Source of the DNA: Bugula neritina
Taxonomy: Eukaryota; Animalia; Bryozoa
Assembly (NCBI GenBank): GCA_964035545.1
Contig: OZ037765.1
Span: 6,396,698 to 6,460,697 of the forward strand
Reading direction: 5' to 3'
DNA: 64,000 nucleotides
Part shown: positions 1-49,200 of the stretch, in pieces
Numbering within the stretch: position 1 is the first letter of the stretch
Layout: the number at the start of each line of letters is the position of its first letter
The notes under the pieces: generated by a model
The model's database searches: none
Seen by the model: only the letters and a program-made list of their open reading frames with translations
What the model was told of the DNA's origin: nothing
Position numbers and translations under genes: made by a program

Positions 1-390
1 CTGATCTGAGCTATAATATAGTACAAATGTTAAACTTAATTACTTCTCTCATTGCATTTCACACACTCACGCACAATATAATATTTATTTGAGACTCAGT
101 AGGTATAATAAAAAGGAAAACAATGGATCATCAAAACTTTTATAAAAAGCTTGAGGTTATCTGATTCAGAGTAAGATATCATAAGCTGCAGGGCATATGT
201 TGGTTCCCTAGCCCATTGAAAGATGAGGAACATTAAATTTATAAGCGGGGCCTCAATGATTCCCATTCTGAAATGATTCGGTAGGAGCTGAAGTTATTTG
301 AGTCAAGAAAGCAAAATATATACAGTAAATGTTATTAATGTTGATGAGTTACTTTAGTTACAAACTGGAATCAGCATATCAGCGTTCAAA

Positions 391-1008
391 ATGAAGTTCA
401 ATCTCTTTGCTCTCATACTATTGGCTTCTACCGTACTAATGGCAGCATCTATAAATGTGTCAGCAATACTGGACAAGATAGGAAGCAAACTTCCTAACAT
501 TAAAGGCCCAGGTAACAATCCATGACACGCACATAAACTAGTTTTATTACTTTATCTATAGGCTAGCTTATAAATAGTATATTGAGTGCATTGAAGAAGC
601 TAAGCTGACTAACCCAGTCATAATTTCCTTTTGACAGCACCTTCAAACAAAAAGTAACACACATGGAGTTTATCTGGTAGATTTTTATGGGTAGCCTATT
701 TATGATCAATCTATTAAGTATTCTAGTACAATCTGAAGAGTTGATCATTTTCATCTAGCTGTGACAATTTGTGTTTTTTGGTAGATATATTCTCTTTTCT
801 GCATTAGAGCATTTTCATTGGCACCATCTTTTACTTTGTAGCAGTTCATAATAATGGATTCTATCTTGTAAAATTCAACATGTTTTTATTTATTTCTATA
901 TTGATTGTTTTAGATTATGCCAATGCTGGAAATAAGAATCATGGTGGAACAACACCACCACCTTTTAATCCTTCAATTGGAAAAAGAAACTTTGTGTATA
1001 TTTTTTAA
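391..1008 (+). CDS. Putative small secreted peptide precursor (71 aa, 2 exons: 391-511, 914-1008), C-terminally amidated; candidate antimicrobial peptide or neuropeptide
   Basis: ATG 391 (caaaATG) opens MKFNLFALILLASTVLMAASINVSA (signal-peptide-like) then ILDKIGSKLPNIKGP. A phase-1 intron runs from cag|GTAACA (512) to tgttttAG (913). Exon 2 reads DYANAGNKNHGGTTPPPFNPSI-GKR-NFVYIF, with TAA at 1006-1008 overlapped by AATAAA (1007-1012). It is too short for the ORF track. Confidence 0.6.
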
Positions 1009-2019
1009 TAAAACTATTTGAGAATTTATCTTATCTAATTATCTATTTACTTAAATATTCAGTGATGTACAAATTATAAAATTATATACAATACATAAGC
1101 TTCATGTTGTTAGGCAAAACAGGTAAGTAGTGTAGTGCAGCCTCATCAGAGCGCAAGCTTGAGGCACCATTTCCTGCCCACTATCCATTTCCTGTTGACT
1201 GTAGTCTGTGAGCCTCATAGACCAGGTCTTTCAATAACAATTTGTCATATACTTTGCGGTGTCGGCATATACCTTTATTCTGTTGATTACTTTATAGATT
1301 TTAAATTTGATCAAATTTTTTTTTCAAGATTCTACTTAGTTAATATCCATTAGTCAAAGTGCCTGTGCATAAGCAGAGACCAGAATGTGCCATAACTTTT
1401 ATAAGGCATATATAATACTTTCCACCAACTCAAATATTTTTCACCAAACAGCACAATGTTTTGTGGACCCCTCACCAAGAAAAAATTGAGGTAGGCTAGT
1501 CACATGCACAATATTGATGACGACATGCATTCTCAACAAATCAAGGACTCTCAACTTAAAAGAGCTGCTCTACATTTTGGAAACAGATTGATTAAAGGAC
1601 ACTGCAAAAATGTTTCAATGTAGAGTGACACCAATAAAAATTCGAATTCTCTTAATATAGAAATTAATATAAGCAGAGAAAAATTGTTTATGTAGAAGTC
1701 GTGAGATAGGACAGCCAGTGATGATGAGCCATTTTACCAAACTGCAAAGGTTGTCTTCTTCTTGTATTTTGACACAAGGGAGCGAAATAGCCACTTATTT
1801 TGTTCACTCTAATTATCGGAATATAGTCGAATATATACGTAGTGGCTGATGTATAAAGTACAAAGTATACGTATAACTTTGCACTCCCGCTGGCAGCTCC
1901 ATAATTTATTTTTATTTTTAATTCCGTAAAATTCAATGAATGATAGAAAATGATAGAAAATCAGAATGTGAACGGATTGTCATTTATGCATTTTTAGTTG
2001 ATAAATTGATATCAACATG

Positions 2020-7074: not shown

Positions 7075-10000
7075 GCTGTCCAGCTACAAGTTTCACTTCT
7101 ACTACTACTTCTGGCCTGTGCAATTGTGATTGAAAAGTCTGATAGCCAACTTCCATAAAACTATACTTCATAATTAATTCACAATAGTTGTTCTATACTT
7201 CCTGAATTTTGTATTCAATTCATAAACTATAAATTCTGATAGTTAATATTTTAAATAATATGTTTTTGTGTTAGTAGCTAATAAATTTAGAATACAAGTA
7301 ATTATACTATAGCTCTGTTTGATCTAACATTTACTTATTATAAAGTGTTTGAAAATTATGCAATAAATGCTGGCAGAATGTATATAGAAGTGCTTTACTA
7401 TTAACAGAAGTGTTTTTGGTCATAAAAATGATACACATGGCATATTATTTTCCGTGTGAAAAAGAGACTATGATTATGCACTGCCTTACTGTTTCTACTA
7501 GTTTATGTTACACTTAATCTCACAATTACTAGATTTAAAGGTTTCGTTACTGGCTTTTAATGATATACATGCCTATACGTAGAAATAGCATCTCCATATG
7601 AAATGTTGACATAAATGCTAAAGTCACTGCTGTAACAGAAGTAAATATAATACATTTCACATTAGCAATGGGTATTTGGTAATTGGCACCATCAAACCTC
7701 TCCATTCTATGGGCAATGCAAGATGTTTAAAGCTTATTGACAAACACACTGATCTGCGCTACTGGTGGGGGTATTAAATTTATCTTCAAGACTATCTATA
7801 ATAAAATACTGTGTAAATGTTTCACCTGTGCTTGACAGACTTTGCAGTTTGGCTTAATTCGACACAAGCTGTGTCTTTTAATACATGTGATATGTTGACT
7901 GTGTTAGCATCTTAATAGCTTATGGTAGCCTTAATACTTTTGCCAATGTGTTAATATACATATCCCTTGCATCCATATCCTTCACACTTGAGCAATGCTG
8001 CGTCTTCCTCTATAATATCGTTTGCTCAGTAAGGCTGGCCTTCTAAAATCTAGAGACACCTCCCATCTCTCCAACTATAAGTTCTACAGATTATAATTAA
8101 TACATATATACTTCTCAAGGAGTTTAAACCATCTTGTTGACTATCATATCTCTAAAATGACAATATGAAGCTGGGCAACAATCCCTTAGTCAAACTACAA
8201 CCTATTCATGACATACTTTTTATAAACATCAACTGTGTATGCCTATTGGTATCAACTGTCAAATTTGTATTTGCTGAATGTAGCGATCTAACCCCATTGA
8301 CGCCTAACCTATCATGAACAATCTCTTTTTAATTCCACAATCATTTCTATCATTATTACCATATTCCTTCAACTATAAGTACTTGAATTTTCACAGCCCA
8401 ATGCAAGAACAACCGCCAAACTGCTACTGCATATTTAAAAAGCATCAGGATTGTACCTGCTAATACATGTAGTTCCTTACACTATAGCAGTATGAAGGCA
8501 TATCATGGTACTCTGGCATTAAATAAGTTCTTTGTAGGTTGTGCAGTTTTTTACCAAACTATCACCAGGTTATGCTATAAACTGTTGCATAATATCATAT
8601 ATAGTAGTCACTAAGGATGGTGTAAAAAAATTCAAAGTAAAAGTTTTGGCTTTTGGTTAGGCATTACTGCCGTGCATTATTTGCACACATAGCAAGCTGC
8701 AATGACAATAGATAAAAACTTCATTTGTTTGCTAGAATATCTTATGTGAGAGCTTTAAATGTTATAATTTTAATTTAAAATAAATACAAGAGCAAACAAT
8801 TGCGGAGACAGCGTGACCAATCCTTTTGTTGAATTTTGATTTGGTTACATGCGACATGAAATCAATATTTGCTAAATTTTAAAGCAAATAACTTTCGCCA
8901 TATATTTATTGGTATTGCAACACTATTTCAATGCTATAGAACAGAAACTGAAAACTTTGCATACAACAGTGTTGTATTAAAAGATTAGTAATTGTCAAAA
9001 GTTGACTTGAATTAATATTTTGGTGTTTACATTACAACTACTCTGAATATTGTGGATTGTATCATTTCTTTCGCAACTGCTGGGCTTTTTATTCGGAAGT
9101 ATCATTGTTTAACATGATTAGTCAATTAGAGTGTTTCAAATATCTTTTAAATAAATTTTAGATATTTGATAAACTCGCAAATAGTTGGATACTGACTAGA
9201 TCGGAAATTGGACTTAGAGAATACATTTGCATCAACACAATGTTTTGCTCTGCAGTATATTTATATACATGCTCCAACCTTTGAATTATATATTAGGTGT
9301 TTGTTTCTGTGCTTGCCACATGTAACAGAGAGCTCTCCTCCAAACCTGCACGCAATTACAATGTTTTACAACACCTAAATTAGAGCAAACAATTGAATCT
9401 TGAACTGATTACAGAATGTTACAAAAAGGAATAAGCCACGTGATGATTAATTAATGCAGGCTGATGTGTTACGGTTTCAGTTAAGTTTGCTAAGGACAAT
9501 GATGGTCATGTAAATAGATGTTCAACTGGTGCAATATTCATTATTAGCAATATTTTTATTATGGTGTACAACAGTTCAACCACATGTGCAATATTCAGCA
9601 CTGATACAATGCACTAAATAATATCCAATTGCTCATGTGTTTACAGTGTGAGAAAATTATTACTATATTGAAAGATGCCTGTTGCAGGCAGAAGTGCGTG
9701 TCTGCACTTTATCCAATAAATTCGCAAATTGTTGCCTATCAAGTAAAGATTTTTATTTGTAGTAAAGTTGTTTTTATCTCGGAATTCTAACAAAGTATTC
9801 AAATCTATCTGCAATTTATTTGTCAATATTTCCACTATACCTAATGTTATTTTATAACTCCAACTTCTTAGTACAAACCTAAAGTTATGTATAATAGCTA
9901 CAATGTAATAAATCTAGTGCAGTAAAACAGTTACACATCTTCTTTGTAACTATTTACTGCTCATTTCATTCACAAATTAAAGAAAAATTAAACATTGTTT

Positions 10001-37200: not shown

Positions 37201-40200
37201 CAAACAGCTGAAGAATTTACAGAGAATAGCAATAAACTTGATGATCAGAGCAGCCAAGACATCGTCATTTTGAGTTCCATGAATCTGCAATCACATGCAT
37301 ATGATGAACCTTACACTCTGAGTGGATAAACATAGCAGGTTAATAGTAGAATACATTCATCCCCACCTCTCAACCCCACCTCCCTACCCCCATTCTATTT
37401 ACTTGACAACTAGCACCTAAGTAATGTAGGTTAAACTACAATTTGGCCAACAGACTTTGAAAAACATTTGGTAAGTTTTATCAGATTTCGCACATAATAG
37501 TTATAAATAATATCACATACAACTAGCTCACCTTGATAACATTGAAATAAGACTCAACAATATCTGGGAATTGAGGATGTAGATATATATGCGGCTGTAG
37601 TAGTTCAACCAGGCCTAGGATGTTGGTGTGTAGAAGTAGCATGTTTCTGTGCAGGAACTCTCCAAACACAAACTGCGCTCTCCCACCTAGCAGTGAGCTC
37701 ATCATCGACACATGCCTGACCAAACAGACAAAAATAGTAACAAAATAAATAAATAAACAACATTAGACATATTGATTCATTGACAGTTAAAGCAGAAGAA
37801 TTTCAAGAGTCAACAAGAAAGTGACCAAAAAGCTGAAATACCAGTCAACTAAGTTTACCAAATTGAAATCTTTTGGCTCCATATTTTCAATAAACCAGAG
37901 AAGTTGAATAAAGGGAAGACAACTGCAGAGAGAAGTGAATCACCTGTGAAATAGAAGTGGGTGGAGAGAAGCGAGTTTGCGGCAGGCTAGAGTGGCATCA
38001 CTGCTGCTGACAGCGTACTTCTTGCCGGCCTTGACCCTGCCCAGAGTAGAGAGGGCAGAGTGGATCTCAGAATCCAGAGTACACGACCCGTTCAATACCA
38101 ACGTCATGTCCTTCTGCAGAATACTGGGGTCCCCCAACCAGTGGATTATTTCTATAAGTAAATTAATTACCTCATAAGGTGGCAGAAGTATACAGTATTA
38201 TAGTATACAGTATTATAGTATACAGTATTATAGTGTACAGTATTATAGTGTACAGTGTTACAGTATTCCGTGTTATAGTATACAGTGTTACAGTATTCAG
38301 TGTTATAGTGTACAGTGTTACAGTATTCAGTATTATAGTATACAGTGTTACAGTATTCAGTATTATAGTATACAGTATTATAGTGTACAGTGTTACAGTA
38401 TTCCGTGTTATAGTATACAGTGTTACAGTATTCAGTGTTATAGTATACAGTGTTATATTATGCCAGTAAATAAACAAAATGCCGAATAAAAAGCTGCAAG
38501 GAATGATTGCTATAATATAATATTACATAGCTGGCAGCAGCAGCAGCAGCACATACCAGGTCTCTGGGTGTACAGCGAAACCAGGAGACGTCTGTTGCTG
38601 ATGCTGTATTGGTAAGAGCTGACGGCCTGAGACTCGAGGTAGAGGACGAGAGAGTGGAGGACAGACTCGTCAACGCAGCAGTCGAGTAACAGTTGAACTC
38701 TGTGAGTGGATGTAACAGCAGTCCTATCATTTTCTGTATTATAAAAAGATGACTGCAACTTATAATACTAATATTATTTGCATACTACAAAGACATATAA
38801 GTTACTAAAGTTAGAATAATTAAACAGACTACACTTACTGGCTAAATACTGGATGAAACTTGACATTTTTGATGCCAAAAATTGGCTGTATCAGCAAAAT
38901 AATAACAATATCTATCTGTATTCACTGCTCAATCTCCACCTACATACAATTGCACACATGTAACCGAGCATATTGAGTTACCTGCAACACTTACCTGAAT
39001 GTGACAAGCTTTCTCCCTCCAGACATATAAGATGCGCCACCATTTGTGTTTGTTCTCTGGTTAGACAGAGCACATTCTCTGACACTGGTTTCTACAACCA
39101 CACCAAGCCATGCAGTACCAAACACTTTCATGTATTGAATAAAGTAATGAACAAAAGAATTTAAAACTTCCTCGGAATAATATGTTGGCCACTATGTTTA
39201 GACAATTGATGCTGCAAACAGTAAATTATCATTCTATTATTACTAGCATTATTTAATTACTTAAATAAAGTCATTTAAAATATGACTATCAAATAGAATA
39301 TGCATGGAAACACCATACATTATTTAATAACAAAAATAAAGTAATTTAAAATAGATTATACATGACTGCACCCTACAGGATATTATACCTTGGGTTTCCT
39401 TTGCTCTCTTCCTTGATACAGCTTAGGATGACTGATACACACAGCTAAGAAGTCGAGGACAGAGGAGGGAGTCCACTGACTCACTCTATCAGCAGACAAC
39501 AGCCTGTCAATAGTCTTTCTTATGGTGCTCCATCTAGCTTGGTGAGTAAGGAGGGAGCGGAGGTATGCGGGCCCAGCCAGCGTAGATTTAGACTGAGCAC
39601 CTGCGTGACCTCCAACAGCACCTGCGGGGGCAGCTCCTTGTCCAAACAGCAATTTGTCTTGCAGCTCAGTGCAGAGGTTGTCTATTTCAGGGTCGAGTAA
39701 CTCCAACCAATCAATTATCAAACCAAGCATTGCTTTACTTTCTTGTCTAGAAGGATAAGATACAGCTCTCCCTCTCACAATGAGAACAAAAATTCTGAAA
39801 ACTAGTTATTTCATCAGCTTGTGACTCAAGAGTAAAGTTAACTCCCTTTCCAAATTACAGTATTTTAGTGATTATATTCAACTTAAAAAGGGTGTTTTCT
39901 CAAAAAAAGTTGATAATTTTTTCCTGTATTTTCTTAGCTATTGAAGAGAACTACTAATACTTACCCTCTCTGTATCCTATAAGCTTGTTTTATGCACGTC
40001 TCTATAGCCTCGGCCCGTTTATTAGAAACACACAAGTTCACCATTTGCTGACTAAACGCTGACGCACTATCCAATGACGTGGCAGAGAGAGAAGACAACT
40101 TTGAACACACACTCTTCACAGTACTTTGCACAGTTTTAGACAATACGGACTCATTTCTCAGCATTTCGAAAAGTTTTAATGTGATAGATTTCTCTGTCTC

Positions 40201-46200: not shown

Positions 46201-49200
46201 ATACAGCATATACACTACTAACTAACATATACACTACTAACTAACATATACACTACTAACTAACATATACACTACTAACTAACACATACACTACTAACTA
46301 ACATATACACTACTAACTAACACATACCCTACTAACTAACATATACACTACTAACTAACATATACACTACTAACTAACATATACACTACTAACTAACATA
46401 TACCCTACTAACTAACATATACACTACTAACTAACATATACACTACTAACTAACATATACACTACTAACTAACATACACACTACTAACTAACATATACAC
46501 TACTAACTAACATATTCACTACTAACTAACATATTCACTACTGACTAACATATACACTACTAACTAACATACACTACCAACATACACTACTAACTAACAT
46601 ATACACTACCAACATACACTACTAACTAACATATACACTACTAACTAACATATTCACTACTAACTAACATATTCACTACTAACTAACATATACACTACTA
46701 ACTAACATATACACTACTAACTAACATATTCACTACTAACTAACATATTCACTACTGACTAACATATACACTACTAACTAACATATACACTACTAACTAA
46801 CATATACACTACTAACTAACATACACTACCAACATACACTACTAACTAACATATACACTACTAACTAACATATTCACTACTAACTAACATATACACTACT
46901 AACTAACATATTCACTACTAACTAACATATACACTACTAACTAACATATACACTACTAACTAACATATACACTACTAACTAACATATACACTACTAACTA
47001 ACATACACACTACTAACTAACATATACACTACTAACTAACATATTCACTACTAACTAACATATTCACTACTGACTAACATATACACTACTAACTAACATA
47101 TACACTACTAACTAACATATACACTACTAACTAACATATACTACCAACATACACTACTAACTAACATATACACTACCAACATACACTACTAACTAACATA
47201 TACACTACTAACTAACATATTCACTACTAACTAACATATTCACTACTAACTAACATATACACTACTAACTAACATATACACTACTAACTAACATATTCAC
47301 TACTAACATATGCCTTACTTGCTGAACAGTGCTAATAAAAATAACTTACAGCTACACAGTACACAATTTCACAAACAGAATGACAAATACAGTGCGAATA
47401 CTTTAGCCTACCTGGCGTTCATACTAATCAGCTGTGAGAGCAACAGACTATTAGTCTCCGTGATGGTCACATTACTCGTTGCTGCCGCTAAATGACCTTC
47501 AAACTCCAGAATTTCCTGTTTCTCCAGTTCGCAGATCTAACGGCATGTATAAGAAATGAGTGATGAATATTGCTATAGTGTTGGTAATTACACTAACTGA
47601 AAATGCATTGCCAACAGTCAAGCACAAAAAGAGGAAACACATTTATTTGTAAGATGTAGTCTGACCTGTCTCTCCTGAGCTACCAGCTGCTCCATGTCAG
47701 TGCCAGAGCTGACAGGTGGAAACAGGTACCTGTTGGTCATCACCATCTCCATAAGCATCTCCAGAGTTGGGTACTCCTTCCAGACATATTTACCTGAAAT
47801 ATTGAGACTAAAACATTAGCCTTTAGCATATTATATGCTACTATCAGCTGAAGAAAGTTCATTATTGAATTGGAAATTAGTATAGGGCTAAATATAAAAC
47901 TTTTGACATTCAAATTAATTTCCAATATTTTAATAAACATTAGAGTTCCATATTTTTATAATGAATACTTCTATAAATTGCATTCTATTGTGTAAATACA
48001 TACTACTATGTATTAAATTATTAAATTACATACTATTATTTACAAATTACATACTCTAAGCAAAAACTATACCTTTCAACATTAAAATGAAACTATTAAC
48101 ACACGCAAGCACAAGGATAAAAAAACACAACTTACCAAATGTAGTTGGATTATATGCGACCAAAACAAGTATTAATAGCCATGATTTCCAAAACATGGAA
48201 GCGATAGCAAGGTGGGGAGGTCTGTAGCCTTTCGGTAATTTAATATTATCTGGGTGGTGATAAGTTGATACATTTAATAGCAATTTCACAACGTCTAGAT
48301 TCTTAATCTCCAAGGCAGGATAATCTACAATAAAATGTGTAATGAAATGTAGTTGTACGATATTAGCAGCAAAGAAGAAATCACTTACCAGTCAGCAGTG
48401 TCTCAAAAACATTGAGAGAAATTAGAGTCCTTAAAATAACTTTTCACGAACTTTACTCAGTTATATTTTGATATGAGATTTGAAAATTGAAACGACCCCC
48501 AATTGGAAATCTCTTGATAATTTCTTATAATCTTAAATTTATGTTTTTCAATTAACACTTGCATAGGGAAATTAACACAGCATTGATGAAAAGAGAAACT
48601 TGAAGATATTACTTCTATTCTTGCAACATTTTCTGCTTACAACAGCTATGCACTGTTTTCATACTTCTATTGATGAGTTGCAATGAAGACTGATTATTAG
48701 TTTTTGCTATTATCACTAATTTACTGTTCTTTACATTAAATATAGTTGACACTAACTAGTGACTTTGAGAGCAGCTGCTCTGTTCACCATTAGCTCCATA
48801 ACATCAAGAGCATCAGAAGCTTTAAGGGGGTACTCTCCATCCATGCCCATCATGAGCAACCTTAGCAGAGTGTCCTCCAGCACTGGGGTCTCTGAGGCTA
48901 AGCGCAACATAATCTTTCGATCCTACAGCAGAAAACAAAACACGCTTCAGAACTGCGAAAGAAATAGGAAGACAAATTAAGACACGACACAACTTATAAT
49001 AAGGAATGTTATACAACCAAAGCAAAAAGATGTCAATTTGATAAAATCTTACAATAAATTAACAATGACTTACATATAATAAGAAATATTATGCAGCAAA
49101 AAAGGAAGATGCTAAAACCTTGCAATAAATAAACAAAAAATTTAAATTCTTGAACAATTTTGAGATTTATGAGATATTGCCAACTGTTAATTCTCAAGTG

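Follow-up and report, generated by a model that had tools for sequence, protein, structure and literature searches.

A two-exon reading frame upstream of PRKCSH in the Bugula neritina complex, possibly encoding a fast-evolving secreted peptide

The stretch of DNA analysed here, called the window, has 64,000 nucleotides (G000:C1:6396698-6460697) and belongs to a 216 Mb assembly with 33% GC from the Bugula neritina complex; the host is a bryozoan of this complex and not an insect. The candidate locus is single-copy in this genome and intergenic, 1.6 kb 5' of PRKCSH, and sits in the 3.6 kb gap between that gene and its upstream neighbour, a gene on the same strand whose end lies some 1 kb ahead of the window start. 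PRKCSH begins at 2598 with its own ATG and signal-peptide exon (2598-2702), spliced to 2833. Exon 1 of the candidate is therefore not a PRKCSH exon, and its use as the signal-peptide exon of this gene was rejected. The rest of the window carries ordinary metazoan genes, including PRKCSH itself and a DMRTA-type gene (Pfam), and further ORFs that we take to resemble an integrator subunit and UBE4. Some 300 nt 5' of the PRKCSH start, positions 2040-2340 are a patchwork of low-complexity repeats (tagtct, aactct and ctag motifs). A match to Rfam mir-1743 within them (2138-2204) is sub-threshold (25 bits, with a gathering score of 100) and most likely due to chance. Two other repeat arrays were noted in the window. 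A 19-nt minisatellite (CATATACACTACTAACTAA) with about 60 copies occupies positions 46207-47307 and accounts for a GC skew of -0.49 between 46 and 48 kb; a 15-nt array (38187-38461) yields mirror "ORFs" on both strands.

The candidate frame is composed of two predicted coding exons separated by an intron (Table 1). The anatomy given for it in the earlier note, with an ATG at 391, a leader, a phase-1 GT-AG intron, GKR and a stop codon inside AATAAA, is exact to the base. Positions 391-510 translate to MKFNLFALILLASTVLMAASINVSAILDKIGSKLPNIKGP, in which residues 1-25 (391-465, MKFNLFALILLASTVLMAASINVSA) form a signal-peptide-like leader followed by ILDKIGSKLPNIKGP. Crude heuristics identify in this leader a Lys in the n-region, a 17-residue uncharged hydrophobic core, Val at -3 and Ala at -1, all kept in the sibling lineage described below. 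The split Asp codon is made of base 511 (g) and bases 914-915 (at), the splice dinucleotides are GT 512-513 and AG 912-913 with a pyrimidine-rich acceptor, and positions 916-1008 translate to YANAGNKNHGGTTPPPFNPSIGKRNFVYIF and the stop. An in-frame alternative acceptor at 841/842, which would add a hydrophobic 24-mer, was discarded because the sibling has a 10-nt insertion that disrupts it; the acceptor ending at 913 is therefore the conserved one. The predicted precursor has 71 residues and no Cys. On the assumption of a cut after VSA, the mature peptide would have 15+1+21 = 37 residues, in agreement with the length of about 37 residues expected by the earlier note. Its composition includes 6 Pro (16.2%, in both lineages), 4 Lys, 2 Asp, no Arg and no Cys, for a net charge of +2 before the termini are counted. 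Positions 317-322 read TATATA, a TATA-like string that is CATATA in the sibling, and position -3 of the ATG is an A. Upstream ATGs at 329, 338 and 344 would precede the candidate start if transcription begins 5' of them. At the other end, a TATAAA at 1075-1080 would put an alternative mRNA end near 1104, where conservation stops.

Table 1. Features of the candidate locus in window coordinates, with their state in the sibling lineage
Feature	Positions	Strand	Remarks
Upstream block, putative core promoter and 5' UTR	286..390	+	no indels relative to the sibling, well conserved; roles inferred only
Exon 1, predicted coding part	391..511	+	40 codons and base 1 of the split Asp codon
Predicted phase-1 GT-AG intron, 402 nt	512..913	+	donor cag|gtaaca, acceptor ttgattgttttag|at
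Exon 2, predicted coding part	914..1008	+	(D)YANAGNKNHGGTTPPPFNPSI, GKR 979-987, NFVYIF 988-1005, TAA 1006-1008
AATAAA polyadenylation-type hexamer	1007..1012	+	overlaps the stop TAA 1006-1008; identical in the sibling
3' block, putative 3' UTR	1009..1106	+	97.9% identity to the sibling

The frequency at which such a layout arises was estimated with a composite scan for an ATG ORF of at least 30 codons with a G|GTRA donor, a pyrimidine-rich in-phase AG acceptor, G[KR][KR] and a stop associated with AATAAA. The candidate locus is the sole match among about 1000 such ORFs from the window, its reverse and other loci of the genome, and the crude signal-peptide filter is passed by 4 of the 2517 ATGs in the window. 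The composite layout is thus beyond what chance would usually give. Extrapolation to 216 Mb still yields up to a few tens of accidental composites genome-wide, and the anatomy alone is therefore no proof of a gene.

A word-index search of 5.8 billion proteins, carried out separately with each exon frame, gave one protein for each, both unspliced ORFs on JGI metagenome contigs, and no homologue beyond these. The contigs come from a sibling lineage, about 10% diverged, that carries the whole locus in two JGI metagenomes: a 9084-nt contig of sample 3300002729 (L015) has the full locus, and contigs L016 and L003 of sample 3300003318 hold its two halves with the same sequence as L015. The spliced product of the sibling is absent from the 5.8-billion-protein collection. 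A HMMER search of 1.84 billion representatives with a profile of exon 2 recovered the sibling ORF and, besides it, only three repeats in translation (P0003-P0005), which are not relatives. Pfam and the ESM Atlas have no match for the candidate, Rfam has no family match for its locus, a metagenome scan with the exon-1 frame returned nothing, and a 24-nt conserved string of exon 2 has no match in the genome contig collection. Paralogues in the same genome, a search for which the earlier note had proposed, were found neither at the DNA level nor with the exon-1 or exon-2 protein. The peptide strings occur in no paper of the literature searched, and the candidate peptide is absent from the set of cloned B. 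neritina neuropeptides (Wong et al. 2016, PMC4990251, text and supplement). The description of the locus as lineage-specific and missed by annotation is tenable for a single-copy locus kept in the sibling and having no known relatives.

The same neuropeptide set includes CYIRTCDLGIL, the cloned vasopressin-like peptide of B. neritina (Wong et al. 2016, PMC4990251, Table 2). A back-translated pattern for it matches the assembly twice, both times on contig C5, and a control pattern has no match, which places the animal in the B. neritina complex. The two matches are identical copies 7 kb apart on the minus strand (G000:C5:7281489-7281520 and 7288522-7288553) and suggest that the vasopressin/neurophysin gene is duplicated in tandem or that the assembly contains a duplicate.

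Alignment of about 1600 nt to the sibling contains 31 gap events, which fall in the intron and in the flank upstream. Identity is 89-90% in the flanking DNA, where indels are many, and 86-91% in the intron, with indels at 528, 559, 657, 692, 697, 771, 851 and 855. Exon 1 (93.4% identity) and exon 2 (91.6%) have 8 mismatches each and no gaps. The longest stretches free of gaps are 286-527 and 856-1062, and these two match the positions of both predicted exons and their UTR-like flanks; outside the exons, a lack of gaps is seen in only 3% of windows of 121 nt and 8.8% of windows of 95 nt. The ATG, GT, AG, the split codon GAT, the stop and AATAAA are unchanged. At the predicted cleavage site, Val -3 and Ala -1 survive while 4 of the 25 leader residues are changed, and the Lys-Arg site and NFVYIF are conserved. 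A frameshift in orthologous sequence, named in the earlier note as a finding that would count against the gene, is thus not seen in the sibling exons, in which all these signals are intact. The 98 nt past the stop (3' block of Table 1) are more conserved than either coding exon, and this conservation ends where the sibling carries a 344-nt insertion.

The sibling intron harbours an LTR retrotransposon of about 7.5 kb in sense orientation (L015:1064-8540), inserted between window positions 725 and 751 and found only in that lineage. It encodes RVT_1, integrase (rve) and MLVIN_C/SH3_Tf2-1 domains, and the LTRs at 1064-1258 and 8281-8475 share 98% identity, so that the insertion postdates the split of the lineages. 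Copies related to this element are scattered across the genome of the window. A further contig, L017 (ENA metagenome assembly ERZ1740065, NODE-15653, 4393 nt), reached with PRKCSH exon 2 as synteny anchor, has PRKCSH exons with 83% amino acid and about 75% DNA identity and dissimilar introns; it probably originates from a more distant bryozoan or other lophotrochozoan. Its DNA 5' of PRKCSH, limited to 1.1 kb, has no match to either candidate exon.

Within the peptide, the predicted carboxyl terminus is the part in which the two lineages differ most. The sibling product ends in HAGTTPPPFNHPI-RKR-NFVYIF, a replacement of the amidation Gly by Arg (GKR to RKR) that is the same in both JGI samples. 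TPPPFNP has become TPPPFNH, and the end preceding the Lys-Arg reads FNPSI-G in the window lineage and FNHPI-R in the sibling; three of the four replacements in exon 2 fall within the four residues before this site. The amidation signal on which the earlier note relied is consequently missing in the sibling, a lack of GKR that the note itself had considered damaging to its proposal. Amidation is chemically possible in the window lineage, since the B. neritina genome contains Cu2_monoox_C genes (copper monooxygenase, PHM/DBH family). These genes form clusters at G000:C9:5514310-5543137 and G000:C4:5715823-5729083, which look like tandem gene expansions, with more copies on contigs C3, C2, C5 and C8.

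The 16 coding differences between the lineages are split 5:6:5 over the codon positions. Nei-Gojobori counts, made exon by exon and then summed, give Sd 5 and Nd 11, with pS 0.10, pN 0.068 and a ratio of 0.68. An omega of 0.2 would predict about 60% synonymous changes, and 5 of 16 are seen. This pattern is compatible with neutrality, and neither with an omega of 0.2 or less nor with the strong constraint usual in neuropeptides. The two-lineage comparison gives no sign of purifying selection at the protein level, which argues against a conserved neuropeptide. ORFs overlapping the candidate in other frames or on the other strand, at 354-518 (-), 917-1021 (+) and 329-394 (+), are also intact in the sibling, and intactness is therefore not specific to the candidate frame. 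An intact ORF in a sibling diverged by 10% is weak evidence by itself when ORFs in other frames are intact too; what helps with such ORFs is to test for codon-position bias and to map indels. Read in this way, the comparison speaks for two indel-free blocks that change somewhat less than their surroundings, and not for translation of the candidate frame.

We privilege, with a probability of about 0.5, the hypothesis of a real, lineage-restricted and fast-evolving orphan gene for a small secreted peptide, cut at the conserved Lys-Arg. The anatomy of the locus, its single copy, its retention in the sibling and the absence of relatives are direct observations; the candidate would be at best a fast-evolving orphan gene, whose transcription, splicing, secretion, processing and function we infer from the DNA. 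The gene, single-copy and with its two exons between the upstream gene and PRKCSH, would encode a secreted prepropeptide of 71 residues. Its leader would direct the product to the secretory pathway and be removed after Val-Ser-Ala. An enzyme of the furin/prohormone-convertase type would then cut after Lys-Arg to release a weakly cationic, Cys-free peptide of 37 residues and the invariant hexapeptide NFVYIF. The Gly exposed in the window lineage would be converted to a C-terminal amide, and RKR in the sibling would leave the peptide with a free acid at its end. Substitutions accumulate in the sequence at nearly the neutral rate, yet length, frame and signals stay the same, a combination fitting a young or fast-evolving extracellular effector, acting in defence or interaction, better than a conserved neuropeptide. 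In favour of such a gene are the indel-free blocks that match the exons, the rare composite, the kept cleavage residues, the Lys-Arg and NFVYIF; to its detriment are the 5:6:5 pattern, the intact ORFs in other frames, the more conserved 3' block, the LTR element in the sibling intron and the upstream ATGs. A more specific version, in which the gene is a young, possibly de novo, bryozoan-specific secreted effector that gained or lost its signal for amidation between cryptic species of the B. neritina complex, is rather unlikely. If true, it would provide a natural pair of amide and free acid, possibly used for defence or in relations with microbes on the body surface or with the bryostatin-producing symbiont. 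Should the orphan gene be transcribed and its mRNA translated, the phylum, whose peptides have hardly been explored, would gain a further orphan secreted peptide, along with a two-lineage contrast between amidated and non-amidated forms of a fast-evolving peptide. The gene would not link bryozoan and insect immunity.

The main rival to this orphan gene is a chance ORF running through two conserved non-coding blocks, which could be short ncRNA exons, regulatory DNA between the upstream gene and PRKCSH, or stretches low in indels, the leader and GKR being accidents of AT-rich sequence. We regard this as a serious possibility, if a doubtful one. It accounts readily for differences spread without codon-position bias at a pN/pS of 0.68, for ORFs in other frames that are as intact in the sibling, for a 3' block better conserved than the "coding" part and for an amidation Gly that is not conserved. 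Neither a homologue nor a protein derived from a transcript is present in the collections searched, chance would produce up to a few tens of these composites genome-wide, and gap-free blocks of 200-240 nt are not rare as such when indels are clustered. Accident explains less well why the two largest indel-free blocks match exons whose prediction made no use of the sibling, why a leader, in-phase splice sites, a dibasic site, a stop and AATAAA come together only once among about 1000 ORFs, or why the residues at -3 and -1 survive in a leader with 4 of 25 residues changed; the blocks also have no Rfam family match. Splicing could alternatively be irrelevant, the 44-codon ORF 391-525 (the leader plus ILDKIGSKLPNIKGPGNNP) being translated as it stands into a micropeptide. 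The sibling keeps this ORF intact, together with the TGA (P0002), but such a gene would leave the second conserved block (856-1106), the acceptor, the stop and AATAAA unexplained and has no polyadenylation signal close after 525, which makes it the least credible of the readings considered.

Two further proposals accept the secreted peptide and assign it to a known class. A conserved amidated neuropeptide or hormone, one of the readings offered in the earlier note, would agree with the order of signal peptide, peptide and Gly-Lys-Arg, and possibly with SIFamide, as PPFNPSI-amide matches 6 of the 8 positions of the arthropod core PPFNGSIF-amide. This core turns up in 54 papers, all of them on arthropods among the matches listed. 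The C-terminal end is normally the most conserved part of amidated neuropeptides, whereas here (FNPSI-G versus FNHPI-R) it is the most variable. The sibling lacks the amidation Gly, the pN/pS of 0.68 gives no hint of purifying selection, and the peptide is not in the cloned B. neritina set (PMC4990251). The conserved amidated kind of neuropeptide is thus not upheld, and we consider it very improbable. In SIFamide precursors the peptide directly follows the signal peptide and precedes a Cys-containing C-terminal partner peptide. The candidate motif lies 29 residues past the leader cleavage, ends as PPFNPSI-G with the terminal Phe-amide missing, and is followed after Lys-Arg by NFVYIF only, with no Cys-containing partner; membership in the SIFamide family was rejected. 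The other proposal, a host-defence peptide related or convergent to lebocin, abaecin and metchnikowin, started from the TPPPFNP string, and the motif match behind it is accurate: TPPPFNP is contained in lebocin-1/2 and PFNP in abaecin and metchnikowin (PMC7736402). The candidate also has the secreted type, the lack of Cys and the net charge of +2 in its favour. Defence peptides, moreover, commonly evolve fast. Proline-rich antimicrobial peptides (PrAMPs) are defined by at least 25% Pro, a net charge of at least +1 and antimicrobial activity with an intracellular target (DnaK or the 70S ribosome), a PRP motif being indicative (Welch et al. 2020, PMC7736402, Box 1). The charge of the predicted 37-mer lies within this definition, but its 16.2% Pro falls short of it, and neither a PRP motif nor Arg is present. 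The sibling has TPPPFNH, and word-index and HMMER searches with single exons found no lepidopteran lebocin or other relative. The cationic amphipathic helix suspected at the N-terminus is not significant, a muH of 0.62 over 9 residues being reached by 7% of shuffles. The insect link, drawn moreover for a bryozoan when lebocin is lepidopteran, is not sustained: the TPPPFNP resemblance to insect peptides is chance, and a defence peptide tied to these families is improbable, if slightly less so than a conserved neuropeptide.

The orphan peptide can be set beside three known systems. Lebocin is a lepidopteran peptide with 25% Pro, net +3 and an O-glycosylated Thr, and RXXR sites are where it is cleaved out of its far longer precursor. 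With lebocin-1/2 of Bombyx mori the candidate shares the TPPPFNP string, a secreted type, the lack of Cys, a mildly cationic character and a release at basic sites that is here predicted; it differs in its 16% Pro, its 71-residue precursor with one Lys-Arg site and the loss of the motif in the sibling. Arthropod SIFamide, (A/G)YRKPPFNGSIF-amide, has likewise PPFN-x-SI and then Gly-Lys-Arg at the peptide end, while the candidate is without the C-terminal Phe-amide, carries the motif at the end of a 37-mer, and has both motif and Gly changed in the sibling. Generic small prepropeptides, the precursors of neuropeptides, hormones or linear antimicrobial peptides, frequently come from two-exon genes that carry the leader in exon 1. 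The likeness to them extends to the layout, the size, the two exons with the leader in exon 1, the Lys-Arg and, in the window lineage, the Gly amide donor. Unlike these, the candidate has no family, no paralogues and no acidic propiece, and its cleavage site is followed by a hydrophobic tail of only 6 residues.
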